A DNA stretch of 64,000 nt from Selaginella moellendorffii (Eukaryota; Plantae; Lycopodiophyta): positions 1,591,769 through 1,655,768 of the forward strand of contig NW_003314271.1 in assembly GCF_000143415.4 (NCBI RefSeq), read 5' to 3'. The position numbers and the translations under genes are program-made. Below, piece by piece: positions 4,781-61,260 of this stretch. A model generated the notes under the pieces. That model was not told where the DNA came from. It searched no databases and worked only from the letters and a program-made list of their open reading frames with translations. Every line of letters starts with the position of its first letter. Positions within the stretch are counted from its first letter, which is position 1.

Positions 4781-4830
4781 TGACAAACTTTTAATGCCTG
4801 TTGTGAGAGCAACTCCAACGATAGAGAGGG

Positions 4831-30085: not shown

Positions 30086-31227
30086 ATGAAGTATGGCTGT
30101 TTGGTTTTAGTGTTCTTCCTGGCGTTTAGTTTTAGACGTTTCTTTTCGGAAGACACTCTTCCGGCGGGTATGGCGTACAACTATTACTCCAAGAGCTGTC
30201 CGCTAGCCGAGCAAGTTATCTATCAAACCATGGTTATTGCTAAGCAGCTGCATGCCGGTATCACCTCGGACGTTACTCGATTGGCTTTCCACGACGCTTT
30301 TGTAGAGGTAATTCATTCAAGTCGGGTTTGACAGTGATTGTGAATTCTTTTATTGACAGGGATGCGATGCTTCGGCTTTGATAAAGTCCACGCCGGGAAA
30401 TCTAGCCGAGATGAATGCCTCCGTGAATAAGTTTCTGGAGGGCTTTGAGTTGATAGACGCTGCAAAGTTTCAGCTCGAGATCTTGTGCCCAAACACAGTC
30501 TCGTGTGCTGATATCATCCAGTTTGCAGCTCGCGATGGAGTCCGGCTGGTAAGAATAAATTTAAATCACTCCAAAGTTTACTTTTCTTGTTTGTGCTAGG
30601 ATGGAGGGCCTTTTTATGCTCTCCCAGGCGGACGACTAGACGGTCGAGTCTCTAAAGCTTCGAGAGCTACACAATTTTTGCCCTTGCCAACAATGAACGT
30701 CAGCGAGCTTAAGGCCAACTTTGCAGCCAAGAACTTCACTCTCGAAGAGCTCGCAACTCTCTCAGGTAAAGCTTGTCACGAAAACTCTGACTAACTCTTG
30801 AGAAAAAACTTCTTTTGTAGGAGCTCACACCATTGGAGAAGCGCATTGCTCCTCGTTCAAGGATCGCTTGTACAACTTCACGGGAAATGGTGACCAGGAT
30901 CCATCACTGGATCCAACATATGCGAGAGAGCTCAAGGCAAAATGCCCCCAGTCAGCCACAAGCGATGACACGGTTCCCATGGAGTCGGAGCCTTCCACTT
31001 CCAAGGTGAACACAGTCTACTACAGGGACATCCTTCGAAGCAAAAGTATATTTACATCGGACCAGACGCTGGTGAATGATCCCATCACGAGAGCTACTGT
31101 TGTCCAGTTCGCTAACAGCACAGAGATCTTCTTCCAGAAGTTTGCAGCCGCGATGCTCAAGATGAGCCTGCTGGAAGTGAACAAACCTGGAGGAGAGATC
31201 CGATATCACTGTGGCTCCATTAACTAG
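30086..31227 (+). CDS. Class III secretory peroxidase, 4 exons
   Basis: Signal peptide, YYSKSCP, RLAFHDAFVEGCDAS, CPNTVSCADII, GRLDG, LSGAHTIG (proximal His) and GEIRYHC; classic 3-intron layout. Confidence 0.95.
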
Positions 31228-31332
31228 CCAAGAATAAAGAAAGTAGAGAAAAGAAAGATCACGCGAGCGAAGGTCAATGAATTCTAGCAGGAAAGCAAAA
31301 CACTCCTTTCATCCAGGCCGACACGCTAGCTT

Positions 31333-33171
31333 TTATCGAGCTCCATCCGAGGATCGAAAGTTGAGACGATCTCTTCCTGAGACCGAGATGGAGAATTGCC
31401 CCGAGCTCGCCAGGAGTGGAGAAGACTGTGCAGCGGGTCTCTCCAGCTGAGGGAATGCCAACACATCCATGGCACCCTCGAGCATCTTCACCACCACAGA
31501 CATCGTTGGCCGCTGCAAGGGATCCTCCTGCGTACACCATAACCCGATCCGGAGGATGTTCTCAAAGCCAGTCAAGGAGAAAGCACCACCATCCTCGGCT
31601 TTGAGCAGCCGGTCGTCCACCAAGTCCATCGAGTTTCCACTGTCCAGCTTGTTGAAAGCGGTTTGTCCGAGGAACACGACGTCCATCTGTGAGCCCGAGC
31701 CCGAGGAACACTCCACGGCCTTCATGCCGCAAACGAGCTCGAGAAGGACGACCCCAAAGCTATAGACGTCAGTCTTGTCCGTGACTCGAGAGTGGAGCCA
31801 CTCGGGAGCCATGTATCCCACCGTGCCTCGCATGACCGTCACGACGTGACTCTCGTCCTTGTCGATGAGCTTGGAGAACCCAAAGTCGGCGATCTTGGCG
31901 CCCATCTTCTCGTCCAGGAGGATGTTCTGGGGCTTGATGTCCAGATGGAGTATCTTCTCGCGGCATCCTTCGTGGAGATAGGCGAGCCCCCGGGCAACGT
32001 CGAGCGCGATGGAGAGCCTGGATGCCCAAGGCAGGGAGCTGTCCTTGGCGAAGATCCAGCTATCCAGCGAGCCATTGGGGAGGAACTCGTAGACGAGCAA
32101 ATTCTGTGGAGAGTGGAGGCAAAATCCAACCATCTTGACGAGATTGAGGTGGTGAATGCTGCCGATCGACATCACCTCCGCCTTGAATTGCTTGTCCCTC
32201 TGCCGCACTCCACCTCCGATCCTCTTGACTGCCACAATCTCCCCGCCCGGCAACGTTCCCTTGAACACACTCGCAAATCCTCCTTGTCCCACCTTGCTCT
32301 GGAATCCCTTGGTCGCTCGATACACCTCCTGGTACCTGAATTGCCGCGGCAAATCCGCGAGATTGCCGAGATCGAGCGGCCGCTCCCTGACGGCAGCATC
32401 GGAAGAGCGTCGCAAGAACTTCCACCACACTAGCCCTAGGAGCGCCAGGACGACGATCGCTCCACTGGAAACCACGGCAATGGCGATATTGCGATCTCTC
32501 GTGCTGGAATCCTCGCGCTTCCAGCTCCAAGTGACCGCCAACACATTATCAAAGTAGGTTTGCCCCAGCGCTTCCCACACGGCTCTCGTCCCTCCCAGCG
32601 ATCTGGGCGAGCACGGCCCATAGAATCCAGTGTCTGCGGTACACCCGATGTTCGATCCACACTGGTCGATCACTGTCGCCGTCACGCTCAGCCCATTCTC
32701 CGCCGTGATCACGATCTCTCTGTGGCACGACGATCCATTGGCGAACCACCCCGTGGACATGGACGCCAGGAGCTCCGAATTCCTTGGCGGCGTCGAGCGA
32801 TTGCAACTCGTAGGGGACTCCTCCAGCTCGATGAAGTAGAATGCCGCGAAATTGCGAGGCTGTTCTTGCGGCGAGCAATTGAAGAACTGGTAGGTGGTGT
32901 TGTCGAAGCAAAGTGCTGGGTTGTGGGCGGTGGCATTCGAGTAGACGAAGGTCTGGGCGGGCTCGCAGCCGGGAATGGGGCAGGAAAGAGTGCTAGCTGA
33001 TGGATCGCCATCGCAGGTCTTACTAATAGGATTGCAAACGAGGCCGCCAGAACAATCGCGCGTAGACTCGCATGTCATGCCGCAGGAGGAGGAGAATTGT
33101 TGCGCGGTGGCCCCGGCGAGTGAAGAGATCAAGATCATCGCGAGCGCGAAGAAAGTGGTGCGATGCTCCAT
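31333..33171 (-). CDS. Receptor-like kinase type A1: signal peptide + kissper-like + kiwellin ectodomain + TM + non-RD Ser/Thr kinase; intronless
   Basis: ATG at 33171 (MEHRTTFF). Kissper-like CGMTCESTRDCSGGLVCNPISKTCDGDP...C; kiwellin motifs YQFFNCSP, MSTGWFANGSSC, NGLSVTATVIDQC, GPC...RAVWEALG, VTWS; TM IAIAVVSSGAIVVLALLGLVWW; kinase [36 protein letters not shown]. Confidence 0.92.
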   Translation of the reverse strand: MEHRTTFFALAMILISSLAGATAQQFSSSCGMTCESTRDCSGGLVCNPISKTCDGDPSASTLSCPIPGCEPAQTFVYSNATAHNPALCFDNTTYQFFNCSPQEQPRNFAAFYFIELEESPTSCNRSTPPRNSELLASMSTGWFANGSSCHREIVITAENGLSVTATVIDQCGSNIGCTADTGFYGPCSPRSLGGTRAVWEALGQTYFDNVLAVTWSWKREDSSTRDRNIAIAVVSSGAIVVLALLGLVWWKFLRRSSDAAVRERPLDLGNLADLPRQFRYQEVYRATKGFQSKVGQGGFASVFKGTLPGGEIVAVKRIGGGVRQRDKQFKAEVMSIGSIHHLNLVKMVGFCLHSPQNLLVYEFLPNGSLDSWIFAKDSSLPWASRLSIALDVARGLAYLHEGCREKILHLDIKPQNILLDEKMGAKIADFGFSKLIDKDESHVVTVMRGTVGYMAPEWLHSRVTDKTDVYSFGVVLLELVCGMKAVECSSGSGSQMDVVFLGQTAFNKLDSGNSMDLVDDRLLKAEDGGAFSLTGFENILRIGLWCTQEDPLQRPTMSVVVKMLEGAMDVLAFPQLERPAAQSSPLLASSGQFSISVSGRDRLNFRSSDGAR

Positions 33172-33462
33172 GGCTGGAGCTTGAGATGCAAGACCTGGAC
33201 CTGAAGATGCCAACTCTCGCGGGTAAGTTAGTTTAAAAGCTCTATCTAAAAGTCAATGAAAAGCTTTAAGAATTGGAACTGCTATATGAACCTTCCAGGT
33301 ATTCTTGTTTGACTTTTCTTGCTTGCCATCAGGATACTGCCAAGCTTCACACTAAACATGACCATAGAAAAAGCACTGATGCGACTTCTCTGATCTCTTT
33401 TATTTGATGTTTTGATCATATAATTCCATGGTCGTCGCTATGAACAGTGGTCGTCTGCAGCT
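33172..33462. promoter_or_regulatory. 291-bp divergent (bidirectional) promoter between RLK A1 and B1, with two W-boxes
   Basis: Start codons point outward; AGTCAA at 33251 and TTGACT at 33309; TATA-like CTATATG at ~33282. Confidence 0.6.
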
Positions 33463-35403
33463 ATGGAGGTACTCCTGTGCTTCATCATCGTCCTAGCGTG
33501 TAGCGCAAAGAGCTTCCACTACTCGCAAGCCCAACAACAGGTATGTTCTTCGTCGACCGATTGCCCAAATGGATCCCTTTGTTTCCCGGAGCCCATGCTC
33601 GGCGGCAACCGTTCACTCCAAAACTCGTCCTGCTACCAATCGAGCAATCGATCCGAGCCATACCTTAGCGATTCCGACGTTTGCCAGCCCAGTTCCAGCT
33701 TTGTTTTCAATGACACCATCGCTCCAGACTGCCCGAATTGCTGCGTCCCAGGCCTGGCTTACAGGACTTTCACTTGCTCTCCAATTTTTCAAGAGACCAA
33801 CAATGCCGTCCTATATGTCACAAGATTCAATCTCTCAAGTCCGGGTTCTCTCAGGTCGTGCACGTCCTTCGGGTGGGATTTTGATCTCATGGCGGCGGTG
33901 GCCACTGGGTGGTATAACCAAGACCGAAGCTTGTGCTCCACGAATATCCAAGTTTTAGCTCCAAATGGACGAACTGTGGTGGCCAGGGTCGTGGCTCAAT
34001 GCTACTCCGGGGGAGGGTGTCTCAGCGATTTTTCGTTCACGGAGCCCTGTGCTCCAAATGCCGTGGCAGCGAACGAGCAAGTGTGGAGGCAGCTTGGGTA
34101 TGATCCAGGCATTGGAATCGTAAAAAATATCACCTGGAGTATCACTACTAACAGTAATCCTCCACAGTCACCGTCTCCAAGACGCATGAACCGCAACTTG
34201 GGGTTAATTGCTGGCATAGTGAGTGCTGTGGTGGTGGTGTTGGTTAGTGTCGCAGCCTTCATAGCAACCAGGCGATGGAGGAGATCTCTTGAGAGACGAA
34301 GAAAAGATGAGCAAGCGCTCATGGATGGAATGAGGCTCGATAAGTTACTTCCACACCAGTTTAGCTATCACGACTTGAGAGCAGCGACTGGAAGCTTTGC
34401 TCCACAGTTCATGCTCGGAGCTGGTGGATTTGGATCCGTCTTTAAGGGGGAGCTTGCAGATGGAAGCCTGGTTGCTGTCAAGAAAATGGATGTAGAGATC
34501 GAAGGCTCTACACAAGGACAGTCACAGTTTAAGGCCGAGGTGATGTCCATTGGAAGCATCCATCACTTCAACTTGGTAAGGCTCCGGGGATTTTGCATCC
34601 AGGGACCAGCTGCATTGCTTGTCTACGAGTTTATGCCCAATGGCTCATTGGACAAGTGGATCTTCACCAAATACGATGATGGCAAAGCTGGCGGAATCCT
34701 GCTGGACTGGAACCAGAGACACTCAATCGCGATAGATGTTGCTCGAGGACTCACGTATCTCCACGAGGGATGCCGGGAGCAAGTTCTTCACCTGGACATC
34801 AAGCCGCAAAACATCCTCCTGGACGAGAACTTGCGAGCCAGGATCTCCGACTTTGGCCTGAGCAAGCTCGCCGAGCGAGGAAAGAGTCAGGTGGTGACTG
34901 TCATGCGAGGAACTCCCGGATACATGGCACCCGAGTGGCTCCATACCAAAGTCACGGACAAGACCGACGTCTACAGCTTTGGAATTGTGCTGCTTGAGCT
35001 CGTAAGCTCCAAGCGGGCCTTGGAATTTCATCCTTTGACATCCTCCTCCTCCTCCTCCTCCTCACAACCGACAGTGCACTTCCTGGGTACAGCCGCATTG
35101 AGCATGTTTTACAGTGGCAAAGTTGTGGAGCTCATTGACGACAAGCTCTTTGTCAATAATCTAAACGACGATATCGCCAGCAGCAGTGGCTTGGATTTCA
35201 AGGATGCCGAGAGATACCTGAAGATTGGATTGTGGTGTATCCAAGCCGAACCAGCAATGCGACCCTCTATGAGAAACGTATTGGATATGCTTGACGGTAG
35301 CGTAGATGTTCTTGAGTTGCCACCACCTTCAAGTGATGGTAGTTCGAGAAACTTTAGCTTGCGACCACCTGAATCCTCTAACTTCAGCTCCACCAGTTTG
35401 TAA
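33463..35403 (+). CDS. Receptor-like kinase type B1: kiwellin ectodomain + TM + non-RD Ser/Thr kinase; intronless, 646 aa
   Basis: Signal peptide; kiwellin pattern CQPS...DCPNCCVPGLAYRTFTCSP, AVATGWY...C, NGRTVVARVVAQC, EPCAPNAVAANEQVWRQLG, ITWS; TM; kinase [27 protein letters not shown]. Confidence 0.93.
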   Translation: MEVLLCFIIVLACSAKSFHYSQAQQQVCSSSTDCPNGSLCFPEPMLGGNRSLQNSSCYQSSNRSEPYLSDSDVCQPSSSFVFNDTIAPDCPNCCVPGLAYRTFTCSPIFQETNNAVLYVTRFNLSSPGSLRSCTSFGWDFDLMAAVATGWYNQDRSLCSTNIQVLAPNGRTVVARVVAQCYSGGGCLSDFSFTEPCAPNAVAANEQVWRQLGYDPGIGIVKNITWSITTNSNPPQSPSPRRMNRNLGLIAGIVSAVVVVLVSVAAFIATRRWRRSLERRRKDEQALMDGMRLDKLLPHQFSYHDLRAATGSFAPQFMLGAGGFGSVFKGELADGSLVAVKKMDVEIEGSTQGQSQFKAEVMSIGSIHHFNLVRLRGFCIQGPAALLVYEFMPNGSLDKWIFTKYDDGKAGGILLDWNQRHSIAIDVARGLTYLHEGCREQVLHLDIKPQNILLDENLRARISDFGLSKLAERGKSQVVTVMRGTPGYMAPEWLHTKVTDKTDVYSFGIVLLELVSSKRALEFHPLTSSSSSSSSQPTVHFLGTAALSMFYSGKVVELIDDKLFVNNLNDDIASSSGLDFKDAERYLKIGLWCIQAEPAMRPSMRNVLDMLDGSVDVLELPPPSSDGSSRNFSLRPPESSNFSSTSL

Positions 35404-35553
35404 TGTTACACCACTATATTGAAACTCTGAAACGTCCCACAAGAAATATCTCTGGAAAAGCAATCAGCTTCATTGTAAATTAGTTGTGAAAACCAACTTA
35501 GTGTCACAGTCTGGGTGGTGTAGTTGGTCATCACGCTAGTCTCACACACTAGA

Positions 35554-35630
35554 AGTCAACCCGGGCACGAGCATTTTTCGATATGGTGCCGTGTCGAAGC
35601 CAAATCCGCGTAGTCAAAAAGACGTTGACT
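35554..35630. promoter_or_regulatory. Cluster of three W-boxes upstream of the BSP/PR-17 gene
   Basis: AGTCAA at 35554 and 35612 and TTGACT at 35625, 80-160 bp upstream of ATG 35712. Confidence 0.6.
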
Positions 35631-35711
35631 TCGTAGCCATAACCGCGTACAAACACTTCATAAACCCCTTCACGAGCCTTCTTCAGACGATATTGATTTT
35701 TGCGATCAACA

Positions 35712-36428
35712 ATGACGCAAACTTGTCTGAGAGTTTCCACTGCACGTCTTTTGAGCTGCTTGTCCCTTGTTCTCGTTATCACGTCCCGTGTCCATGCAGA
35801 CATTGTCCTGGTCGGAGCAAACAATGCCGAGGACACCGACGGTGGCAAGCGCTTCAACTCGGTGATGGGGATCTCCGGGGCCTTCAAAGTCCTGGGCGAT
35901 GCAATCAACTTCATCCCGCCGCTGTTGCACTATGGTCTCGACGGTGTTCCCACAAAACTAGTGACCAAGGTTGTCTTCACGGTCGAGAAGCAGCTCCAGC
36001 AGGGTGCGGTTGCGATCACATTTGGGACGGGCAGTCCCGGCGAGTTCCAGATCCAGTTTAATGCTCCATCTGCCGATAACTACGAGGGGATCAAAGGGGT
36101 AATATACCACGAGATGGCTCACGTTTGGCAGTACTTTGGGCAAGGAACTCCCAGTGGAGTGACTGAAGGAGTGGCTGATTATGTCCGGCTCAAAGCCGGG
36201 CTCGCTCCATCTCACTGGGTGAAGCCGGGCGGTGGTGATCGCTGGGACCAGGGCTACGATGTTACTGCCTATTTCTTTGATTACTGCAATAGCCTCCGTG
36301 GAGATTTTGTGTGGCAGATGAATGCGAGGCTTGCAAATGGTGCGTGGAGTGAGTCTGTGTTCAGTGATTTGCTTGGAAAGAGCGTACAGGATTTGTGGAC
36401 TGACTACAAGAACAAATACGGTGGGTAA
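35712..36428 (+). CDS. Plant basic secretory protein (BSP / PR-17 family), intronless
   Basis: Signal peptide; GVIYHEMAHVWQ (HExxH), EGVADYVRLKAG, HWVKPGGGDRWDQGYDVTAYF and LGKSVQDLWTDYK. Confidence 0.95.
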   Translation: MTQTCLRVSTARLLSCLSLVLVITSRVHADIVLVGANNAEDTDGGKRFNSVMGISGAFKVLGDAINFIPPLLHYGLDGVPTKLVTKVVFTVEKQLQQGAVAITFGTGSPGEFQIQFNAPSADNYEGIKGVIYHEMAHVWQYFGQGTPSGVTEGVADYVRLKAGLAPSHWVKPGGGDRWDQGYDVTAYFFDYCNSLRGDFVWQMNARLANGAWSESVFSDLLGKSVQDLWTDYKNKYGG

Positions 36429-36629
36429 TTAAAACAGTATTTGGTTAGAAACAAATTCTCTTATGCTTTACTAAAAAGAAAATAAGTATTTTTTATCTTG
36501 CACAAGCATTTCTACCACCTCCAAGAGTTGGCTATGGAATAAATTCTTCTTGCAAAGTTTCCTTGTTTGTAAAAGCGCCTTCTTAGCGAGCCAAGTCTGA
36601 GATACAGATTTATACTCCTGAATTTGCAC

Positions 36630-37300
36630 TGCTGCTCATGAGGAGGGACGAAGCCTGTGCAGCAGGTCTCTCCAGCAGGTCTCTCCAGCTGAGGGAACGC
36701 CACATGGCACCCTCGAGAATCTTCATCACAACTGGTCGCTGCAAGGGATCCTCCTCATCATAGCCCGATCCGGACGGTACTCGAAAGCCACTCAGAAAGA
36801 AACCATCCTCGGCTTTGAGCAGTTGGTCGTAGACTACGGAGTTTCCATTGTGGAGCTTGTTGAAAGCGGTCTTCCATCTGCGAGTCCGAGTCCAAGGAAC
36901 ACTCCACGGCCTTTATGCTGCAAACACCAGGAGGACGATTCCAAAGCTATAGCATCGTGGAGTGCCGCTTGTCGCGAATCCCAGCACACTTCAGGTTGGA
37001 ACCAAAGATTCCACCATACCCCACGGGTTTTGGAACACGTCGGTCTCGTCCGTGACACGAGAATGGAGCCACTCGGAGCCATGTATCCCACCGTCACAAC
37101 GTGAGTCTTGTCCTTGTCGATGAGCTTCGAGAATCCAAAGTCGGCGGGCGCCCATGTGGTGCCCATCTTCTTATCCAGCAGGACGTTCTGGGGCTTGATG
37201 TCTAGATGGAGTTGGCATCCTTCGTGAAGATATGTGAGCCAACGTCGAGCGCGATGAAGAGCCTGGATTCCCAAGCCAGGCACTTGTCCTTAGCGAATCC
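36630..37300 (-). pseudogene. Decayed kinase half of a type A RLK
   Basis: [46 protein letters not shown]; nucleotide similarity to 39850-40470 with many deletions and frameshifts. Confidence 0.88.
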
Positions 37301-38019
37301 AGCGAGTACTTCCAATAGAGCACACCCTTTCAAAAAGGTCTTTAAAATTTTATTATGCAGCTTAAATGACTTTGCTAATCAAATTTTAAACACTCTTCTT
37401 CCTTTTCTCCAGTTGTTGTGCTTAAATCGATTGATGCTCCTTTAGTTGCTACCATTCTCGCTATTGTTGCTCTTAATGCTGCCTTGTTATTTACATTTCT
37501 GCTTTTTCATACTAAACTCTTTTCTTTTCCCTTTAGACTCCATTTCAAAACCTTTAAACCCTATTTGTGAAATATTTTGTAAGTCAATAAAAACTTTCAA
37601 GGCTTTGAACTCAGTCGTAATGTATAACAGTTTTAATTGAAGTAAAAAAATTTGATTTAACAATCACTCACTTCCATAGCATTATGAAAGATATATTCTT
37701 CTTCTTTATCACTTTGGGCCATCACTTTAGCGGGAGAGGGGGGTTCTGAGAGCTCAATCTTTCTGTAGGTGAGGGGAATCTGCCCATCAAGAAGGCTACA
37801 TAGATCTCTTCCTTAATAAATTTTTTATCAAGCCCCCACCCACCCCAAAATTCCTACTGCTCACGACATAGAAGAAGACTGTGTTCATCTCTCTACCCCT
37901 CTTTTTCTCTTTCTAGTTCCTTCTAACCTTAAGAAGGATGGGATTTGTTGTGACACTTTATCATTGTGTTGCTCTTCCTCCTCTTCTTTATCCCCATACT
38001 GGCACTAGAATGTTGTATG

Positions 38020-38876
38020 TAGTCGACAAGCATGAAACCGCAGGGAAAATGGATTTAGCAAGCTCGAGCTAAAGCCAGACCACAAGAAGAGACCACTCTG
38101 GGTTGGACCTGATGGCCATATCTTTCTCAAGACGTTTTCTCCGCTACACAAGCAAGCATACGGCTTTCTCATTGTGACTGCCGAGCCTGTGTGTTAGTAA
38201 GCTTCAGGTCTTGCTGATATGGAGAAGTTTTTACACTCAAGTATTTTCTTTGAAACGTTGTTCCAGGCCAGAACATATGCATGAGTACAATCTCACACCA
38301 CATCCTTTGTATCCGGCTGTCTCCGTTGGTCTTGAGACTCAGATAGTCATTACGGTGATGGAATGGCTGTCGAAAGCAAGGCTCCTGCAGAAGATTGTGA
38401 ATTTCATCAAAGAGTCGACTCTGAACTATGGCAAAGTAAAACTAGTTCTGAAAAAGAATCGTTATTTTGTAGAATCTTCTTATCCAGAGGTATGGTGCAA
38501 CTTTGATTGGTGAAACTTACTCTCTGTCATGCAGATTCTGGAGAGGGTTTTAAAGGATAATGTCATCTCTCGAGCCAGAATTTTATGGGAGGCATTTGAA
38601 AGTTTTTCTTTCAAATCCTGTCTAGCTTTCTCACTGCAAAATCTTCTAGGCAAGTGCAGAGCACGGTTTTATGATCAACAAGTCATTGTCCAATAGAACA
38701 AGACTTGCTTGCCGGGGATGAAGTCACTGCTGAGGATGTGATGTGTTTTGAAGTAACTATTCATGTATTGGTTAAGTACACATGAACTTTTCAGGTAGAA
38801 CATGTGAAGCAGAGGTGCCTGCCAAGTGCTTTAAACTATCTGATGTTTGAGGAATGCGACTTTAGAAATGATTCGG
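38020..38876 (+). pseudogene. 5' fragment of a TFIIH helicase XPB gene, introns retained
   Basis: [15 protein letters not shown]...[65 protein letters not shown] and VEHVKQRCLPSALNY..FRNDS; in-frame stop at ~38195; no helicase core follows. Confidence 0.85.
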
Positions 38877-39820
38877 TAATTTCATAATATTTGTTACCTT
38901 TTTCCTAAGCATTGAATTGAGTAGTGCCTCCAGAGCCATGTGAAAAAGAGCGGAAGATAGGTGATTTTTAGCCATGAATTTGAATGCAGCACTGCTGGCT
39001 GTAGAATTCTTCCATGACCTAGCTTTTACAGGAGCCATGCTTGCCGTGGACGCGGAAAGAACTAGCATACCTGCGAGCCCGCCCGCGCGACAGCGCGCTG
39101 AGAATCCCGTCCGCCATCCTTGGCGCCCGAGTCCAAACCCAAACAAGACAACACTACTCAAAACACACTCAGCCAATATTCTTCCTCAATAGTCTAGGAT
39201 CCACTTTCTCTTCTGATAAAGGTTGTTTGTCATTATTGTTTTTTGTGTTTTATATATAAATGAAAGTTAGATAGATAAATAACTGTTGGGGACCACAAAG
39301 GTATCTCCTGCACAAATATGCTCCGGTCAATACATTTATTTTGGAGCCGAGGTAATAGATTGCGTCTGATAGCATGTGATTTCCCAGCTTGTGGGAGGTG
39401 AATTAAATAGTCATTCCTAGCGAGCCAAGTCCGAGACTAAGGCTGCTGCTCACCAGGAGTGATAGAAAACCATTCAGCACCAAATGGTTTTCACACAAAA
39501 CCAAGCATGGGCGGATACAAGCTCCTCCGGCATCACCATTGCGTGCAATAGCAGCACTGCATTCAATTCACGGCTAAAAGTCACCAATCTCCTGTGCTCT
39601 TTTTCGCTTGCATGGTTCTGGGATTCTCAGTATGGATTTGGCCAGCCGAATGGTTTTTAGATTGAAATCCATGGAGCTTGGTTGCATGTAATAGTGGATA
39701 AACACAATGAGTGTTTTGATACTTATACAGCTATATAAAATGGTATATTTGTCAATTTTGCAAAAAATAGTGAACATCAAACCTTTTGATTTCTCATTGA
39801 AAATATATGTAAACGAAAGT

Positions 39821-41587
39821 TTATCCCTCGCTACTGCTCACCAGGAGCGACGAATCCTGTGCACCGGTTCTCTCCAGCTGAGGCAACGCCAACACATCCA
39901 TGGCACCCTCGAGCATCTTCACCACCACAGACATCGTTGGTCGCTGCAAGGGATCCTCCTGCGCACACCATAGCCCGATCCGAACGATGTTCTCGAAGCC
40001 ACTCAAGGAGAAACCACCACCGTCCTCGGCTTTGACCAGCCGATCGTCCACCAAGTCCATGGCATTTCCACTGTGGAGCTTGTTAAAAGCAGTCTGGGTG
40101 AGGAACGCGACGTCCATCTGCGAGTCCGAGTCCAAGGAACACTCCACGGCCTTTATGCTGCAAACAAGCTCCAGGAGGACGATTCCAAAGCTATAGACGT
40201 CCGTCTTGTCCGTGACACGAGAGTGGAGCCACTCGGGAGCCATGTATCCCACCGTGCCCCTCACGACGGTCACTACGTGAGTCTTCTCCTTGTCGATGAG
40301 CTTGGAGAATCCAAAATCGGCGATCTTGGCCCCCATCTTCTCGTCCAAGAGGATGTTCTGGGGCTTGATGTCTAGATGGAGTACCTTCTCGCGGCATCCT
40401 TCGTGGAGATATGTGAGCCCCCGGGCAACGTCGAGCGCGATGGAGAGCCTGGATCCCCAGGACAGGCATTTCTCCTTGGCAAAAATCCATCCATCTAGCG
40501 AGCCATTCGGGAGGAACTCGTAGACGAGCAAGTTGTGTGGAGAATGCAGGCAAAATCCAACCATCTTGACGAGATTGAGGTGATGGATGCTGCCAATCGA
40601 CATCACCTCCGCCTTGAATTGCTTGTCTCTCTGCCGCACTCCACCTCCGATCCTCTTGACTGCCACAATCTCCCCGCCCGGCAACGTTCCCTTGAACACA
40701 CTCGCAAATCCTCCCTGTCCCACCTTGCTCTGGAATCCCCTGGTCGCTCGATACACCTCCTGGTACCTGAATTGCCGCGGCAAATCCGCGAGATTGCCGA
40801 GATCGAGCGGCCGTTCCCTGACGGCAGCATTGGAAGATCGTCGCAAGAACTTCCACCACACTAGCCCTATGAGCGCCAGGACGACGATCGCTCCACTGGA
40901 AACCACGGGAATGATGATATTGCGATCTCTCGCGTTGGAATCCTCGCCCTTCCAGCTCCAAGTGACCGCCAACACATTATCAAAGTAGGTCTGCCCCAGC
41001 GCTTCCCACACGGCTCTCGTCCCTCCCAGCGATCTGGGTGAGCACGGCACATAGAATCCAGTGTCTGCGGTACACCCGATCATCGAGTTGCATTCTCCCG
41101 CGACCGTCGCCGTCACGCTCAGCCCATTCTCCGCGGTGATTACAATCTCTTTGAAGCACGACGATCCATTGGCAAACCATCCGGTCGCCATGTTTGCCAG
41201 GAGCTCCGAGTTCTTGTAAGGCCTGGATCGATTGCATGCCGTGGGGATTCCCTCCAGCTCGATGAAGTATAAAGCCGCGAAGTTGAGAGGCTGCTCTCTG
41301 GGCGAGCAATTGAAGAACTGGTAGGTGTTGTTCCCGACGCAATACTCGGGATCGTGGGCGGTGGTATTCGAGTAGACGAAGGTCTGGGCGGGCTTGCAGC
41401 CTGAAATTGGGCAGGAAAGGGTGCTCGCTGATGGATCGCCATCGCAGGTCTTGCTAACAGGATTGCAAACGAGCCCGCCAGAACACCCGGAATCGCATCT
41501 CCTGCCGCAAGAGGAGGAAAATTGCTGCGCGGTGGCGCTGGCGAGTGAAGAGATCAAGATCATCAAGAGAGTGCTGCCACGATCCAT
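39821..41587 (-). CDS. Receptor-like kinase type A2: kissper-like + kiwellin ectodomain + TM + non-RD kinase; intronless, 588 aa
   Basis: Close paralog of 31333-33171 with all domains intact and a shorter C-tail. Confidence 0.92.
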   Translation of the reverse strand: MDRGSTLLMILISSLASATAQQFSSSCGRRCDSGCSGGLVCNPVSKTCDGDPSASTLSCPISGCKPAQTFVYSNTTAHDPEYCVGNNTYQFFNCSPREQPLNFAALYFIELEGIPTACNRSRPYKNSELLANMATGWFANGSSCFKEIVITAENGLSVTATVAGECNSMIGCTADTGFYVPCSPRSLGGTRAVWEALGQTYFDNVLAVTWSWKGEDSNARDRNIIIPVVSSGAIVVLALIGLVWWKFLRRSSNAAVRERPLDLGNLADLPRQFRYQEVYRATRGFQSKVGQGGFASVFKGTLPGGEIVAVKRIGGGVRQRDKQFKAEVMSIGSIHHLNLVKMVGFCLHSPHNLLVYEFLPNGSLDGWIFAKEKCLSWGSRLSIALDVARGLTYLHEGCREKVLHLDIKPQNILLDEKMGAKIADFGFSKLIDKEKTHVVTVVRGTVGYMAPEWLHSRVTDKTDVYSFGIVLLELVCSIKAVECSLDSDSQMDVAFLTQTAFNKLHSGNAMDLVDDRLVKAEDGGGFSLSGFENIVRIGLWCAQEDPLQRPTMSVVVKMLEGAMDVLALPQLERTGAQDSSLLVSSSEG

Positions 41588-42554
41588 GGCTGGAATTGGA
41601 GATGCAAAACACCGGTGGTAAATTGGTTTAAAAGCTCTAGAAAAAGTTGACCTCGTGCATGCCGAGTTAGACTTTTCAAGATCGAACTCAGAAAGATTTT
41701 ATCTTTGAGAAATAAAAAATTAAGTTATGTGAGTTTATTAATCCAGTCAAAAACTATGTTGTCTTCAGGTCCCCCCTTCAAGCTGGCCCGATCCTTCCTT
41801 GATGGTTACAGTTGGTTGTTTCCACATTACACACACTCCCCGTCTTCATTCTCTACTTATATCACCATCGTCACAAGGACTTGCCCAAGATGGATTCCTT
41901 TGTTGACAAAGCATCCCTGCTTGGAAAATTACCAAGCCAAGAAATAACAGCATTGAAAGATCAGGATTGTAGCTTGAATTGAGATGTTGCCATGTTATTA
42001 AGCTTGTGAGTGCTCAGTACCAGGAGAGTCGACACTTCCATAACCATTAAAAATGTTCTAATCTGAATACATTATAGTCAAGTATCTTCAAGAATGGTAC
42101 CACCAAGAAGAAGAGTGTGAAGGCATATGCCAATATAAACACTTTGTATTATCACTCTGGTATTTTTGTATGTAGTGACATTTTTGTGGTCCCTTGAAAA
42201 ACTTCTTTAGAAGGACCCTAAGCGACAAAGCAGACGTAAGATGCCACGTGGCGGAGAGAGAGAAGAGAGAGAGAGAGAGAGTTGCAAGGGACCAACAATG
42301 CCGTCCTTTATGTCACAAGCTTCAACTTCTCAAATCCAGGCCGTGCACATCCTCACAATGGAATATGAAACCCATGGCAGCGAGATGGTATAGCCAAGAC
42401 CGAATCTTGTGCTCGACAAACATCCAAGTTTTAGCTCCAAACAGACGGATGCGGTGGTCAGAATGGTGGCTGACTGCTACTCCCCAGACGGGTGATCATT
42501 CGTTCACGGAGCCCTGTGCTCCAAATGCGAACGAGCAAGTGTGGAGGCAGCTTG

Positions 42555-42770: not shown

Positions 42771-45700
42771 TTACCCCCCACTTTGAAAAGCTCTATCCTC
42801 AGAGCTGGCTGGTAACACAGGATCCCACTAAAACAGGTGCACCAGACGATCGAACTCCTGTTGAGAAAGCCAGGTATCTGCATCCCCCCCAGTGTTCATC
42901 CAGCAAACCAGATAACGCTTAATCATCCATCAACGCAGCTGGCGAGTCTCCACATCAATCACCTTATTTGGCACAACCAGATGCTAGTCCCCCAACGATC
43001 GGACTGGAACTTCCACTGTCGGCAAGGGAGTAGGACCATAATGCAACTTGAGCTCGGAAACGTGGAACACATCATGGAGCTTGCACCCTTGCGGAAGAGC
43101 CAGCCGAAATGCCACCTCATTGATCCTTTCAACCACCTGAAAAGGACCGAAGTAGCGTTGAGTCAGCTTGGATCGAGAGCCCACTCGGCGGCCTAGAGTG
43201 TGAAGAACTTGATGTACACCAGGTCGCCAATAACGAATGTTCGAAAACTCCGATGCTTGTCAACTTGAAGCTTCATGGTTGCACAAGCTGCCTCCAACCT
43301 GCTATGAACTTGTTGATGCAACTCTCGAATGGTCTCCAGATGTCCAGAAACTGTCACCTCTGGGACCGGAAGTGCGGGAGCTGGCCAATGTAGGATTCGA
43401 CGCCCATAGAGAATCTCCAAAGGAGCAAACCTTGTAGCAGAATGACAGGCCGAATTATATGCGAATTCCGCATATGGGAGCCAGTGCAGCCATGATGTAG
43501 GATGATCCAGTGTGTATCCCCTGAGAAATACCTCTATTGTCTGGTTGGTTTGTTCTGCTTGCCCATCCGATTGGGGGTGATATGCTGAACTGAAGCTGAG
43601 CTTGGTCCCAAGAGCTGAAAAAAGGTGACGCCAGAATGAGCTGAGGAACTTCGGATCCCGGTCAGAAACAATCTCCCGAGGCAGGCCATGGAGACAAATC
43701 ACTTCTCGAGAAAATAACTCGGCTATCCTTGCTGCAGACACCGAAATTGTTGTAGGTAGAAACTGAGCTGTCTTGCTGAAACGGTCAACCACCACCATTA
43801 TCATGTCTTTTCTCTGGCAACGAGGTAGACCCCCCACAAAGTCCATTGAAATGCTAGTAAAGGGACCATCTGCAACTGGTAATGGCTAGAGAAGACCTGG
43901 AGAAGCCACTGTCTCTGTCTTTACCACCTGACATACTGGACATTCTCGAATCCACGCCTTCACTTCTCGCTGCATGCCTTTCCAAACAAAGCGAAGCTTG
44001 ATTGCTGCCAATGTTGCTGCCACCCCTGGATGTCCAGCGAGAATTCCCTGATGACACTCATGGAAAATTTCTTGCTGCAATGGATGCTTGTTGTTGAGAA
44101 ACACCCGTCCCTTTGACCAGAGAATGCCATCAATGAGGACCAGCTTGGGATGCTGCTCCCCATTCTGAAGCTGTTCTAGAATCTGTTGAAGGGCCACATC
44201 TTGCGCGTACCCCTCCCGAATTTGCTCTATGTACTCTGGTTGAAGGCAAGAAATCCCATAGAGAGCTGATTCCTCGGTGCATGCAAACTTCTGTGAGAGA
44301 GCATCTGGAAGCACATTGGAAGCACCTAGTCGATACTCGATAGTGAAGTCGAAGGCTTGAAGTTCTTCCACCCAACGCATCTGCTTCTTGTTGAGGTGGG
44401 GTTGAGTGAGCAAAAAGCTTCAGCTGTGATAAACTCCGCCAACCGCCGATTCACAAATGTGTGTGAAGCGCCAGAGTCAACCAGTCCGAATGCCACTCTG
44501 CCATTAATTGTTCCTTGCACCCGGAAACACTGCGGACCAGTCTTTCCAAAATATGCTGAGCAGGAGATAAATGCCTTGCCACCTGAACTGTCAGGGTCCT
44601 CCAAGCCCGGGCTGTTGTTCCCTGATTCCCAAACAAAGATCTCCTCACTCTCATCAACCATGTCCATGTCGACTGGAACAAATTCCCCAGAAGCAGCCTT
44701 GCGAAAATGTAGCATCGCCACCTTTGCCTTGGGAACTGTAGCACCCTTCTGAGATGGACAAAACAAATGGTGGCCTCGTGTCCATTTCTGCCCACAATCA
44801 AAGCATTTGCCTAGCTTCAAATCCTTTGAGCGTTTGGCCCGTTCCTGAGTGGATAAATCTCGCCAAGGCTTGCGTTCCTTATCACTGTTCACTGTCGGCA
44901 ACACTGTCGGCATAGGGGTCGGTGATGCAGCTGGGAAATCCTGACAATGAAGCCTGCTTATATAAGGACGACGCAATTGAGACTCCCATTCACGAAACCG
45001 CTGGTCTGCATTCAATGCTGCCACCATTGCCTAACGCACAGAAACTGGTTTGGTTTGAGCGACATCACCTGCCATTGATGAAGGCAGCGCTGCTACGTAA
45101 CGCTGGGCCAAAATCTCGTCTGAAACTCCCACTACCTCATATCTGGCCCATAACTATGCTGTATTGAATGCCTGGAGAGTTTGATGTTGCCAGTCATAGC
45201 GAAGGTCGCACAACTTGTTGAAGGGCAGCTCCAAAACTGGGGTCAAGATGAAAGTGTCTGTGATCAAGACTTTGAACTATTCCCAGTCTGGGAATATGCG
45301 AGCTCGTTCCAAGTTATGAAACCACTCAGATGCCAGATCCTTCAAGAAGATTGATGCAAAAGGGAACCTTATCCACCCCCTTGGTATCTCGCCACACAAA
45401 ACACCACTCCAGCTTGTGGAGCCAATCTTGAAGTCTTAGTTGATCATTTGAGCCATCGTACTCCAGTATATTGAGCTTCTCCCGATCCTGCCACCGTGAT
45501 CCCATCCCTGGACCCCTCCCGAGTATCCCCTTGGTCCCTCCTTCCGGAACTGGTGACTTCATCTTCTCCAGCAAGTCATCATACCAAGGTCGATCACCTG
45601 TTGGGGGTAATTCAGGGCTCGAATCTTGGAACCAATCTTCGTCAGAAAACCGGTGCACGATATCTTTCAAATTAGGGTCTCCTCGATCCTTGACCCTAGA

Positions 45701-46237
45701 CCCCATTTGTTCTTGCTTCTCTGCCAAAACCCACTGCTGCTCTCCCAACTCCTCTATCTTGCCACCCATAGTAGCCTGATTGTGCTCGATGATGGCCAAG
45801 GTACGCTGCAATTGTTGGAACCTCTCTAAGTCCTACTGATGATTCGTCACATAGCACTGCATGAAAGACTGCAACACCTCCCTCAACTCACCAACCAGCT
45901 CAGGCACTACCTGTGGAGAATTCACTAGATCGACCACCTCAACATTGCTGGATTCTCCATCGGCTGAAGGGGAAGATTTCACCTCTTTTCTTCCCTTGTT
46001 CCATGGTGGCATTGCTTCTTTCCGGTGCCTCACTCTTGCCCAAGCCCAGATCACCCACGACAGCCTAGGGTAAATGATCGCCGCCGCAATCACCTCCCGT
46101 CGGATACCCTGCTGAGACAGCTGTACCCTAGATTGGGCGAATGCCGTGGTGCTAAGGATGTGGACCAATCCTCTCTCCCACGATGCAATATCCCAAATGA
46201 TCTTTGCCAAGGTCCTGATCAATGCTCCAATACCAAA

Positions 46238-46434: not shown

Positions 46435-47696
46435 GCCAGGCATTGGAATCTTACCTGGAATGTCACTGATAGTAATCTTCCACAGTCAATTCGAAGCAAA
46501 AAAAATTATCTGGGAGTGATCGCTGGGGTAGCAAGCGCTGTGGCGGGGGTGGAGAAGCAACCAGGAAGTGGAGAAGATCTAATGGAAAAGCAAGCGCTCA
46601 TCGAAGGAATGAAGCTCGATGAGATACTTCCGCACCAGTTTAGCTATGACGACTTGAAGATGGCAACTAGAAATCCCGAGCTCATGCTTGGAGCTTGAGG
46701 ATTTGGATCCGTCTTCAAAGGAGAGCTTGCGGACGTTGCTGTGAAGAAGATGGACGTAGAGATCCAAGGCTCGTCGAAAGGACACTCGCAGTTCAAGGCC
46801 GAGGTGATGCACTTCAACCTGGTAAAGCTCCGGGGCTTTTGCATCCAGGGACCAGCCGCATTGCTTGTCTACGAGTTCATGCTCAATGGATCACTGGACA
46901 AGTTGAGGCTTGACATCCAAGTGATCCCGGCAATCCTTCGTGGAGGTATGTGAGTCCTCGAGCAACATCTATCGCAGCAGATTTGCTGATCCGCCACCTT
47001 TGTTATCATCGTTCTCGGTGAAGATCCACCTGGACGAGAACTACTTTGGCCTGAGCAAGCTCAAGCCAGGTGGTGACTGTCATGCGAGGAACTCCCGGAT
47101 ACATGGCACCCGAGTGGCTCCACACCAAAGTCACGGACAAGACCGACGCCTACAGCTTTGGAATCGTGCTGCTCGATCCAAGCGCACCGTCCAGTTCCAT
47201 CCTCAATCATCCTCTTCCTCCTCATCCCCCTCACCCGCGGTTCCTGGGCGAAACCGCGCTGAGCATGTTTCACAGTGGTAACGTCGTCGAGCTCATTGAC
47301 GATCTCGCCAGCATAGCAGTGGCTTGGAGCTCAAGGACGCCGAGAGGTACGTGAAAATCGGACTGTGGTGCATCCGAGCCGAGGCTGCAATCCGCCCCTC
47401 TATGAGAAACGATATGCTCGGAAGTAGCGTCGACGTTCTAGACTTGCACCTTCAAGTGAGTAGCTCCAGAAGCTTCAGCTTGCGACTACCTGGATCCTAC
47501 TTCAGCTCCACTAGTCTGTGATGTTACCCTCTAGATACCGCCATGATCATCAAGACCGAGATAGAGTCTCGCAAGTGTTGACGTTATATTGGCAGAGGAG
47601 AGTCACTCCCTTCTTCCGATCTTCGAAGTATTTCTCTCTACTTCTAGCCAGCGGGAACGAGGAAGCATACCCGGAGACGATATATATTTCAAAGAA

Positions 47697-50541
47697 TCAA
47701 GGGTCTTCGTCCGCACCACCATCAGCCTCACAAAATCTGAAGTTGGGCTCTACGTTCATTGCCCACGCGAATTTGGCCAGCAATGACTTATTAAAAACCT
47801 GTGATCCAAATCTCCTGCCTCAGTAAGAGAAATAAAAGAAATGAAAGTAAGAAGTGCCTGGTTACCTTCTCAATGGGAATTTCGTGACGCTTGCACCAAG
47901 CGACCGTTATTCGAGGATCCATGTAGTTGATCTTTGACGTTCCCAGCGCCACGGTTTTGAGATCTTCTTTAACGGACAGATCCAAGGTCATCTTCGCTAT
48001 CCTTGCATCAGTTTGAGCCAACTTCTTTTCCAACCTGGATTTTACATGAATAGTCAGTATCATAAAAGTAGAAACATAAAAATCATCTACTTACTGTTCT
48101 GCGGTTGGAGGCCTTTTAGCCGTGCTGTGGACTGGGGGTTTGCCCTTTTTAACTTTCCCCAAGTCTGTTGCAAGTTCCTCACGCAATGTCTGCCAATAGC
48201 AAAGCGTCAGCCTCAAACAAACCATAAAGAAAAACAGACCTTTAACTCTGCAATCTTTGCCTCCAATCTTTCCATCTGAGCACTATGGCCCTTGGATACT
48301 GTCCGTTGATGATTACATAGAATCGCGACCTGTCAACAAGATTCATAAGTGCTAACCAAACAGAATGTTCTCTTACCTCCTTATTTGCTCGGGAGTATTC
48401 TGCAGTTTTCTCGTTAAGAGTCGCACCAAGCGTCTCCTTCAACTGTAACAAGTAATGCGTCGGATCATTTTGGCCTTGACAAAGCAAAAGTCGCAAACCT
48501 GGGTCTCCAAAGTATATGACGCATTATACGTTCGAAACACCTTCGCTGTTAGACCTTGCATGTACTTCTTCAGATGGGCATTAAGCTTAGAAGTATCTAA
48601 CCTATCAAAGAGGTCAACCCCTTCCTTTTTCCCTGTGTAACAAACAGCTCATCTCAACGAGGACAACACAAGTCACAACATACCTTTCTTGAAATCGTGT
48701 ATAGCGTCGTATACCTCTTCGTTTACAACCACAGAGTTTTGGTACCTGATGGAGTCTTTACCCAGAAAATCGAACTGTAAATATGCGAACCATAGATCAC
48801 AAAACAACAGTCTCAAGTCCTCAACAAAGCACCTCAAGCGAGTTCGGAGGGGAAAGAGAGACGTGCTCCACTTTCAACGAGCAGCAGCCAACCGTATCAG
48901 CTTCATCGTCATCCTGAAATCAAAATGTCAATTCACAGGCACGAAAACGACACACTTTCCACCTTTTCGTTTCCTGCTCTCAGAGCAAGCCTATCAATAA
49001 GATACGTGGCCACCGCAATCTGCCGTGCTTCCACATCCTTCTCTTTAAAATCCTTTGTGTAAGATTCCCGTATGCTATCAATCTGACAAGAAATGAAGAT
49101 TAGAAAAGAAACGAAAACGCCTGCTTACTTTTGACGTAAGCTTCCTAGCCTTATCGTATTTCTCCTCATCGCTCTTGCCCTTCAAACTACTACTTTGATG
49201 CAAAAACACGTACTTAAACTCCTTCACATTGATCGGGTCGTTCCAAAACGCAAGCCAGGTAACGGTGTTATCGTGTCTGACTTCCTTCCACCTGCGGTAA
49301 GCAAAGTTAAGTTAGCCTAACAAGATAAGAATCATGTAATGAACACTTACTTGTGACCAGGAAGTGGACACTCTGGAACTGGTGCTTCTTTTCCAATGTT
49401 GAGTACAATGTCTTCAGGAAAAATGCGCCGTTTCAGCTTTCCCATCTAAACGACCATGGTGTGAAGCTTACAAACAAACTGAAGCTTAAGTACCTTGGGA
49501 TGCTCGCCGCGGCCCCGGAAAAGGCCAGGAGGCTCCACTCTAAAATTTCCAACCTGTTGGCACGAGTTACAGTAAGAAAACTGCCATGAGGTGGAAAGAA
49601 AAGAAGTAACCCCGCCTTCTCTTTGACACCATCGATCAGAACCCATGCATAACGTTCTTCTGCTTTCGCCTTCTCCTCTTTCAGTTGCTTTTTCTCCTGC
49701 AGAAAGAAGTGAGACAAACACATAATCCACGGACGAACACACCTCTGCACTCATTTGCTTCTTCTTCTCTTTCTCCGCGGCATGCCAGTCGAAAATAGGA
49801 GTGAAGTCGCACAGCTCAAGCTTCTGGATGACGTGCTTTGGACCAAGAACTTTCTTCCAGTCCTCCCAAAAGTTCTTGACAAAGACGGGCTTGGTTGCGT
49901 AGTCAGTGTCTTTCATCACGGCAAACATCGTCGCGATCTGCAAGACCAGCTACAATTAAACGAAGAAAGCGAAACAAAGAGCTAAAAACCTCCTCTTCTT
50001 CTGGTGTAAGATCGATTGGCCGACCATTGTAGAGCATCTTCACTCCATGCGGGCTATACGGCGGGGGAAAGAGCACGCCATTGTGCTCCAGCGTCGTCCA
50101 TTTTGGCTCAGCAACACTCCCCTTTCTGGGTTTCTTGCTCCTAGCCTTCCCCTTCGTCACTCCCTTCTTCCCTGGCTTCGCACTATCGCCCCCAAAACGC
50201 TTCCCAATGGGAACGTCCTCGTCCTCGTCTTCGTCATCCTCCTCCTCACTCTCCTCATCGCTGGAGCTCACCTCGACTTTGGATTTCTTGGAAATGCCAT
50301 TGGCGGACGCTGGCGCGGGCCTCTTCCTCCCGCTGGCGTTGGAATCGGCGGAAGCCGGCGCCGCCGCCACCGATCCATCCTTGGAGGAGCTGGCGTGCTG
50401 CTCCGCTCCGGGATTGCGCGCTCTCGCGGAAAAGATGCGCCGGGCGAGGGGGACGTCGTCCTCGTCGTCCGAATCCTTGGCTGGATTGGCCTTCTTGAAG
50501 CGCGCCGCGAGCGGCACGTCGTCCTCGGAGGAGGAATCCAT
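47697..50541 (-). CDS. TOP1: DNA topoisomerase I (type IB), multi-exon
   Basis: [66 protein letters not shown], catalytic [13 protein letters not shown]; last exon [14 protein letters not shown]. Confidence 0.96.
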
Positions 50542-53854: not shown

Positions 53855-54600
53855 AAATCCTGGATCGCCATCACAAGTATTGCCATCACAATCTAGAGAA
53901 GGCGGATCAGCAAGTCTGGACATCAAGCCGCTCCAGGACGAGAACTCCCGGATACGTGGCCGAGTGGCTCCACACAAGTCACGGACAAGACCGTCAGCTC
54001 CAAGCGCACTGTCGAGTTTCATCCTCCATCTTCCTCGTACGACGATCTCGCAGCGCTAACAGTGGCTTGGAGTGAGAGGTACGTGAAAATCGGACTGTGG
54101 TGCATCCAGCCTGAGGCAGCAATCCGACTCTCCATGAGAAACGTCCAGGAATTCTTGATCAATTGATCACTTCAATGTTGTCGCAAGCTGAAGGTTTGGA
54201 GATACCATCATGATGCTAGCTCCAAAACCTTCAGCTTGCAACTACCTGGAAGCTCCAGCTCTCACAGTGAGATCATGGATCATCGAGACCGAGATAGGAG
54301 TCTCACAAGTGTTGACATTATATAGGCACGGAGACGGTATATATTTCAAAGAATCAACGGTCATTGTCCGCCTCACAATATCTGACTCTATGTTCATTCC
54401 CAACGCGAATTTGGCCAGCAATGACTTAGTGAAAACCTGTGATCCAAGCCTCAGTCCTTTTCAATGGTAGCTTGCACCAAGCGACAATTAATCAAGGATC
54501 CATGTAGTTGACTTTTTACGCCAAGACACCCCAACCACAAAGTTTCTTAAATTAAAAAACTGTCTCAAGTCCTCAGGAAAGAGAGATGTGCTCCACACTC
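53855..54600 (+). pseudogene. Heavily deleted relic of a type B RLK 3' end plus TOP1 3' end (copy of the ~46900-48900 region)
   Basis: ctggacatcaagccg, gagtggctccacac..gtcacggacaagaccg and gagaggtacgtgaaaatcggactgtggtgcatcc, then the RLK-TOP1 spacer and TOP1 pieces (cgcgaatttggccagcaatgactta, ggatccatgtagttga) in the same order. Confidence 0.85.
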
Positions 54601-61009: not shown

Positions 61010-61260
61010 CATTGTTAGCCACTCCAAAGGATCCTCCTGGGCCATGATAGGCCAATCCAAATGATCTTCTCAAACCCACACAAGGAGAAACTATCTAATC
61101 CAGCTATCCAGCCCTTGGGGAGGAACTCGTAGACAAACAAGCTGAGTGGTGAATGGAGGCAAAATCCCAACAGCTTGATGAAATTGAGGTGATGGATACT
61201 GCCAATGGACATCACCTTGTCCCCCTGCCCCGCCAATCCTCTTGACCGCCACAAGCTCTC
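61010..61260 (-). pseudogene. Short decayed relic of a type A RLK kinase domain
   Basis: VMSIGSIHHLN.IKLLGFCLHSP...VYEFLP fused directly to FSLCGFEKIIWIGL (large internal deletion). Confidence 0.8.

Follow-up and report, generated by a model that had tools for sequence, protein, structure and literature searches.

Receptor-like kinases (RLKs) are sorted by their ectodomains, and with every class of ectodomain that is newly recognised a further set of ligands comes within reach. Few apoplastic defence proteins have an effector target defined by structure; kiwellins are among them, and the question raised by the stretch of Selaginella moellendorffii DNA analysed here (64,000 nucleotides, NCBI RefSeq assembly GCF_000143415.4, contig NW_003314271.1, positions 1,591,769 to 1,655,768, forward strand; hereafter the window) is whether kiwellins have been joined there to receptor kinases and, if so, what such proteins would sense. 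In this study, we found that three uninterrupted, intronless open reading frames (ORFs) of the window are kiwellin receptor kinases (kiwellin-RLKs), lying where the first-pass annotation of the sequence had placed them, and that they belong to two types, A and B, which stand head to head. The reading that we prefer, with a rough probability of 0.45, is that they are working single-pass receptor kinases of the SD-2b subfamily which would sense secreted foreign proteins, an A/B pair starting defence.

A public protein with 100% identity identifies the window as S. moellendorffii. All three ORFs have the same layout of signal peptide, kiwellin ectodomain, one transmembrane span and complete SD-2b-type kinase, as read from the ORF listing and Pfam. 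ORF1 (31333-33171, minus strand, 612 aa from its ATG) is of type A, in which the ectodomain consists of a kissper and a kiwellin part; the mechanical reading frame extends upstream of the ATG to a TTG at 33213. Its signal peptide is encoded at 33100-33171, the ectodomain at 32488-33099, the transmembrane span at 32422-32487 and the kinase at 31489-32301. ORF2 (33463-35403, plus strand, 646 aa) is of type B, with a diverged kiwellin, and is divided into a signal peptide (33463-33531), an ectodomain (33532-34197), a transmembrane span (34198-34266) and a kinase (34414-35283). ORF3 (39821-41587, minus strand, 588 aa), also found by tblastn, is a second type A gene, with its ectodomain at 40919-41530, transmembrane span at 40853-40918 and kinase at 39920-40732. 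ORF1 and ORF3 are 86% identical over the part aligned by BLAST, and ORF2 is about 41% identical to type A. A script located a single strong hydrophobic span after the ectodomain, at residues 229-250 of ORF1, 246-268 of ORF2 and 224-245 of ORF3, and counted five, seven and five N-glycosylation sequons and 14, 16 and 14 cysteines on the N-terminal side, respectively, two of the 16 in ORF2 falling in the signal peptide. The proposed layout of three intact ORFs with a signal peptide, a Cys-rich and glycosylation-rich ectodomain, a transmembrane span and a kinase was thus borne out. The usual description of kiwellins as small soluble secreted proteins fails for these genes, as one transmembrane span and a kinase of 270-290 aa lie within each ORF.

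Profile, sequence and predicted fold all identify the ectodomains as true kiwellins. In Pfam they scored 71.6 (ORF1), 76.2 (ORF2) and 72.2 bits (ORF3) against KWL1 (PF24300), for which the cutoff is 27, and a profile of six Selaginella ectodomains matched the only solved kiwellins (6FPG, 6TI2, 4PMK and 4X9U) at E values of 2e-33 to 2e-28, while the sequence matches of the ectodomains to solved kiwellins spanned 1e-21 to 1e-33. The ORF1 ectodomain alone aligned to residues 2-187 of the 189 of kiwifruit kiwellin 4PMK, the N-terminal kissper peptide included. AlphaFold models of the ORF1 ectodomain (pLDDT 84.2, pTM 0.81) and the ORF2 ectodomain (pLDDT 81.8, pTM 0.79) both had 6FPG as the top PDB match, with target TM scores of 0.86-0.87 and 0.85 (E 3e-15 for ORF2). 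For both models, the kiwellin chains of 6FPG, 4PMK, 4X9U and 6TI2 ranked first in Foldseek, with E values of 1e-12 to 3e-15, root-mean-square deviations of 1.7-3.9 A and target TM scores mostly of 0.79-0.90, the full-length chain A of 4X9U being lower. The motif series CSP, TGW...C, NG.(S/T)V.A.V...C, PC...VW..LG and (V/I)TWS, from which the first-pass annotation had recognised kiwellin, is visible in the alignments and coincides with columns that hardly vary among 50 aligned kiwellins; the N-terminal Cys-rich stretch of type B is longer and more diverged than that of type A. The earlier identification therefore held both at the level of the family profile, with KWL1 above its cutoff, and at that of the fold, with 6FPG as the best structure match.

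The kinases belong to a known subfamily. Pfam matched Pkinase in ORF1, ORF2 and ORF3 at E values of 1e-43 to 3e-44, and the Gly loop, VAVK, the alphaC Glu, the HLD catalytic loop, DFG and APE/APEW are present in all three, and the kinases are apparently active; the loop is of the non-RD kind, with HLD instead of HRD. Their nearest non-kiwellin relatives, at 47-50% identity, were SD2-5-like G-lectin RLKs, MpRLK-Pelle_SD-2b4 and short At5g20050-like proteins, and in a maximum-likelihood tree the kiwellin-RLK kinases nested with these same relatives in a clade supported at 100/99*, with CRK and other outgroups outside. The eight Selaginella kiwellin-RLK kinases formed one clade (87/62), and together with two Selaginella B-lectin SD-2b kinases they formed an all-Selaginella clade (96/94*). 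In ORF1, ORF2 and ORF3, Pfam gave no match to B_lectin, S_locus_glycop or PAN, and KWL1 stands in their place. These results are consistent with a kiwellin having taken the place of the B-lectin ectodomain in the lineage leading to Selaginella, a direction of exchange that we infer.

In 18 or more RNA-type runs, which represent at least eight studies, 27-82% of the sampled words of ORF1 and ORF2 are present, and RNA contigs of four runs from four studies were mapped to 30900-36600 (5,701 bases). Both ORFs were covered by RNA contigs and no joints were reported; therefore, ORF1 and ORF2 have no introns. Contig depth was zero at 33192-33382, inside the spacer between the two ORFs, in all four runs with both flanks covered, and therefore the RNA signal is not genomic DNA. 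In ORF1, two contigs (32295-32955 and 32405-33073) each connect the kiwellin core, by way of the transmembrane span and the juxtamembrane part, to the first kinase residues, and ORF2 is represented by contigs 33397-34166 and 34223-35363. The call for contiguous transcripts was thus answered for ORF1, whose ectodomain is joined to the start of the kinase in single unspliced contigs, and not for ORF2, where 34167-34222 stayed unbridged. Splice sites at the loose ends of RNA contigs at 31926, 32099 and 34936 were considered and rejected, and we attribute these ends instead to contigs from paralogous kinases with conserved words in common; again, no joints were reported. The NCBI model P0001 (570 aa, "L-type lectin-domain containing receptor kinase S.7") consists of the first ~500 residues of ORF2 and a pseudogene exon 12 kb downstream; it passes over ORF3 on the opposite strand, and its C-terminus matches an ORF at 47070-47354. 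This model looks chimeric, as the RNA contigs run straight through ORF2 without such a joint. Public names for these genes include "G-type lectin", "L-type lectin", "PERK10", SD2-5 and At5g20050, and several of the genes are mis-spliced, so that the public annotation of kiwellin-RLKs is misleading in both name and structure.

Both domains are under purifying selection. In six pairwise Nei-Gojobori comparisons of close paralogues, omega (dN/dS, the ratio of nonsynonymous to synonymous divergence) was 0.31-0.58 in the ectodomain and 0.12-0.19 in the kinase, with ectodomain dN two to three times kinase dN; for ORF1 against ORF3, the values were 0.31-0.32 and 0.18. That omega lies below 1 in both domains supports function. 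Along ORF1 and ORF3, synonymous divergence was 0.03-0.07 over residues 181-320 of ORF1 (32212-32631), a stretch from the end of the kiwellin through the transmembrane span to the start of the kinase, versus 0.25-0.9 on either side, a pattern suggestive of recent gene conversion between these two type A genes over this tract.

The divergent ORF1 and ORF2 are separated by a spacer of 291 bp (33172-33462), delimited by sequence and RNA depth, which would presumably serve as a shared bidirectional promoter. Types A and B stand head to head at five places in the S. moellendorffii genome: twice in the window, at L002, at L003/L004 (two near-identical scaffolds, counted once) and at L007. At L002, type A P0015 (minus strand) and type B P0007 (plus strand) have a gap of 387 bp. 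At L003, type A P0161 (plus) faces a type B protein of 566 aa, P0003 (minus), across 1,149 bp, and at L004 the identical P0161 (plus) faces a type B protein of 618 aa (minus) across 222 bp; L003 and L004 are probably two haplotypes of one locus. At L007, type B P0002 (plus) lies ~290 bp from a type A gene split into models of 154 and 388 aa (minus). The second pair in the window is formed by ORF3 and a degenerate type B copy on the plus strand, of which the kiwellin fragment remains as the 5' part of a pseudogene at 42285-42553 (tblastn with ORF2 residues 110-211, 57-79% identity in two frames, motifs decayed) and the transmembrane and kinase fragments as its 3' part at 46447-47446 (residues 222-619, 59-76% identity in several frames). 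The A/B pairs have been duplicated as units. In the kinase tree, P0015 is the basal branch of type A, and P0007 that of type B; the pair is therefore older than its own duplications, and because of this we propose that A and B work together.

The 154-aa model at L007, P0016 ("ripening-related protein grip22"), was considered as a soluble paralogue and rejected, since it lies directly upstream of the 388-aa kinase model on the same strand and head to head with P0002; it represents the N-terminal half of a type A gene, or model of one, that has been split. This type A partner of P0002 (L007 5795-7710, minus strand) is thus broken or mis-modelled, and the name of a soluble kiwellin is misleading.

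An exhaustive hidden Markov model search with the ectodomain profile against 1.84 billion representative proteins returned only 354 proteins at E <=1e-3; of the 150 that were listed, ten of the longer ones were examined with Pfam. Kiwellin and kinase occurred together, among the matches listed and including those previously known, in Selaginella P0001, P0005, P0012 and P0015 and in the metagenome contig protein P0035. A search with P0035 led to a small angiosperm group, in which three groups of Logan contigs stand with P0189 of Cuscuta campestris; the Logan and JGI contigs of the group are P0172, P0190, P0197 and P0035 itself. In the saguaro cactus (Carnegiea gigantea), L006 8034-9776 (JAKOGI010000032.1) matches P0172 over its full 579 residues without interruption, at 95.5% identity. 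Among the matches listed from this search, the architecture was seen only in Selaginella and the angiosperm group (saguaro and Cuscuta). The annotated Diphasiastrum, fern, moss and liverwort proteomes that supplied SD-2b matches gave no kiwellin-kinase protein, and the ESM Atlas held no large cluster with KWL1 and Pkinase, only soluble kiwellin or double-psi beta-barrel (DPBB) clusters with low scores. The earlier suspicion that the architecture might prove widespread was answered in part: it is rare, but it is not unique to this locus or species, with at least five pairs in S. moellendorffii and copies in saguaro and Cuscuta.

The angiosperm proteins have the same order of signal peptide, kiwellin, transmembrane span and SD-2b kinase with an HLD loop as those of Selaginella, but they score 168 bits against KWL1 versus ~75 bits and lack the long divergence from canonical kiwellins. 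Their kinase sits in a 100/99* clade of angiosperm SD2-5-like proteins, and their kiwellin belongs with those of Carnegiea, a Silene kiwellin lying next to them. A single origin of all kiwellin-RLKs was rejected by an approximately unbiased (AU) test on the kinases (lnL difference 47.3, p 0.00056), run after the tree was seen, and both domain trees are against it. The domain trees and the AU test therefore indicate that the fusion of kiwellin to a kinase arose at least two times independently, each time on an SD-2b kinase, and a second independent fusion argues that the combination is useful. The one identified soluble Selaginella kiwellin (P0023/P0315) falls elsewhere in the tree from the Selaginella ectodomain clade and so does not place the source of the ectodomain; Rhynchospora P0022, which appeared as sister of that clade, was treated as a long-branch effect.

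The Cuscuta campestris copy, at L005 6001-8030 (OOIL02002078.1), has one intron and lies between ordinary nuclear genes. The Cuscuta and saguaro copies group together in both domain trees though the plants are distant, and the Cuscuta genome paper described a defence-biased transfer of genes from Caryophyllales hosts (PMC6023873); horizontal transfer of the Cuscuta copy is thus a possibility. The public model P0010 mis-splices the saguaro kiwellin-RLK to a second kiwellin gene 5 kb away.

Considering these results, we propose that kiwellin has replaced the usual B-lectin ectodomain on an SD-2b kinase and would keep the habit of its family of binding secreted foreign proteins, by analogy with the maize KWL1-Cmu1 pair and with the receptor kinase PR5K. 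The non-RD kinase would then be activated when an apoplastic ligand is bound; the two types would probably act as a co-expressed heteromeric pair, and this pair would start a defence response, comparable, at the cell surface, to PR5K or to an integrated decoy. We infer the immune, effector-sensing role by analogy only. A bolder version, in which kiwellin-RLKs are paired, bidirectionally transcribed cell-surface "integrated decoy" receptors, effector traps turned into alarms that effectors targeting kiwellins would trigger, reached independently in lycophytes and angiosperms and possibly handed over to Cuscuta, seems doubtful to us as a whole.

Several findings weigh against the proposal. With canonical kiwellins the ectodomains share only 30-37% identity, and their branch in the tree is long; behind the kiwellins their next Foldseek relatives are glycan binders (expansins, loosenin, cerato-platanin and barwin). 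To our knowledge, no kiwellins other than those of maize have been reported to bind Cmu1. The HLD non-RD loop is common to almost the whole SD-2b set examined and is not specific for immunity; it is therefore inherited and is weak evidence for an immune role. The pairwise comparisons gave no signature of positive selection or an arms race, omega being below 1 except in short windows beside the transmembrane span. Furthermore, the RNA contigs listed leave 56 bases unbridged near the transmembrane span of ORF2.

Glycan or cell-wall sensing is the main rival to effector sensing, and the computation here does not separate the two, although we consider it unlikely. The kiwellin double-psi beta-barrel would bind a poly- or oligosaccharide, from the plant's own wall, as a signal of integrity, or from a microbe, and the kinase would report it, in the way that the replaced B-lectin would bind sugars. 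The Foldseek relatives just named suit this explanation (the expansins include a cellopentaose complex, and the loosenin is joined by cerato-platanin-like and barwin-like proteins), as do the lectin ectodomains of the parental SD-2b receptors and the purifying selection on the ectodomain, with omega of 0.3-0.6. However, kiwellins are far closer (E 1e-15, target TM 0.85-0.9) than the expansins (E 1e-4 to 1e-5, target TM ~0.4), which trail, together with loosenin and the cerato-platanin-like proteins, by about ten orders of magnitude, and the kissper module and extra disulfide-rich loops are specific to kiwellins, for which we know of no report of glycan binding.

Appreciably less probable is a receptor for an endogenous signal of development, reproduction or abiotic stress, in which kiwellin would merely be a Cys-rich scaffold, as in many lineage-specific RLK families. 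Expression in many unrelated RNA data sets suggests that the genes are constitutively expressed, and the purifying selection on both domains also speaks for this reading. However, the family shows a turnover like that of immune receptors, with tandem and segmental duplication, pseudogenes, a copy disrupted by retroelements and probable gene conversion, and kiwellins are otherwise tied to defence. An artefact of annotation or decay, that is, chance read-through from a kiwellin into a neighbouring kinase or a set of non-functional copies, is largely refuted, for although several relatives have truncated, split or faulty public models (P0001, P0004-P0006 and P0016) and clear pseudogene fragments lie within the window, five further family members from other loci translate as single open frames in addition to the three of the window, omega is well below 1 in both domains, the catalytic motifs are intact, RNA contigs cross ectodomain, transmembrane span and kinase start without joints, and the architecture has been kept across deeply diverged paralogues.

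The preferred reading, that kiwellin-RLKs sense secreted foreign proteins, can be set beside known systems. Soluble kiwellins (maize KWL1, 6FPG, and KWL1-b, 6TI2; kiwifruit Act d 5, 4PMK and 4X9U) share with the window proteins the KWL1 family, the predicted double-psi beta-barrel and the Cys, CSP, TGW and TWS motifs, and the kissper module of the kiwifruit kiwellin is also present in the type A ectodomain. In contrast, they are secreted proteins of ~150-200 aa, whereas the window proteins tether kiwellin by a transmembrane span to a kinase. The SD-2b RLKs (Arabidopsis SD2-5, MpRLK-Pelle_SD-2b4 and At5g20050-like proteins) share the kinase, at the identity given above, and the HLD(I/V)KPQN loop, but carry a B-lectin/S-domain ectodomain in the place that kiwellin takes in the window proteins. 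CHRK1 is an RLK with a chitinase-like ectodomain, and the kinase of PR5K belongs to the LRK10L-2 subfamily, unlike SD-2b. PR5K (thaumatin-like) and CHRK1 share the design in which a pathogenesis-related secreted protein serves as RLK ectodomain, although the folds of their ectodomains differ from kiwellin. PR5K is a recognised RLK class (PMC10868138), and maize KWL1 has been solved in complex with the Ustilago effector Cmu1 (PDB 6FPG title).

In the literature on kiwellins and on receptor-like kinases, including a kiwellin-family paper, we found no description of a kiwellin-RLK fusion, and RLK reviews and surveys and a paper on the evolution of S-domain RLKs made no mention of kiwellin or DPBB. 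An ectodomain census of 80 species lists "Barwin-RLK: 2" in a table, with no comment and with proteins and species unnamed, and these may or may not be kiwellin-RLKs. The suggestion of the first-pass annotation that the class is undescribed therefore stands for the fusion in the literature searched.

Kiwellin-RLKs are receptor kinases with a recruited defence-protein ectodomain, to which convergent origin and conserved pairing are added points. They are more than an oddity of gene models, for the family is expressed and constrained, head-to-head A/B pairs have been kept, and the same fusion was made on the same kinase subfamily twice, as far as the trees indicate. If effector sensing is true, effector traps can be converted into cell-surface sensors, an extracellular counterpart of the integrated decoys of nucleotide-binding leucine-rich repeat (NLR) proteins. 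The kiwellin-RLKs are thus a concrete and testable system for ligand sensing.

Around the receptor genes, the window holds remnants of other copies. Retroelement ORFs lie between the two parts of the type B pseudogene (43193-45811, minus strand), with Pfam matches to rve and Integrase_H2C2 on the integrase pieces at 43193-43846 and 43886-44413; Pfam matched nothing in the ORF at 44326-45027, and the retroelement ORFs up to 45811 were assigned by position only. A frame-broken type A kinase fragment at 36655-37357 (minus strand; tblastn, 42-72% identity in three frames) is a pseudogene remnant. Short diverged kinase fragments of the kiwellin-RLK family at 53972-54259 (plus) and 61090-61369 (minus), with 34-70% identity by tblastn, suggest older decayed copies along the scaffold.

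Just downstream of ORF2 is an intact gene for a basic secretory protein (BSP) peptidase of 242 aa (35700-36428, plus strand; PF04450, E 8e-51), which had RNA contigs in three of the four runs and places an apoplastic, defence-associated family inside the receptor cluster. At L002, an RBOH-type NADPH oxidase (9933-13717, minus strand; NADPH_Ox, Ferric_reduct, FAD_binding_8 and NAD_binding_6) lies 187 bp downstream of the P0015/P0007 pair, a placement that may be fortuitous or may mark a neighbourhood related to defence. Genes or fragments of topoisomerase I adjoin kiwellin-RLK pairs at L003 14262-14505 and L007 10045-12884 (Pfam), and the window ORF at 47791-48063 (minus strand) resembles topoisomerase I by eye only; this hints that the pairs were spread by segmental duplication carrying a topoisomerase I neighbour. 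Two tandem genes of carboxylesterase type are encoded at 2679-3632 and 3779-4786, both on the minus strand (Abhydrolase_3, E 1e-54 to 1e-57).

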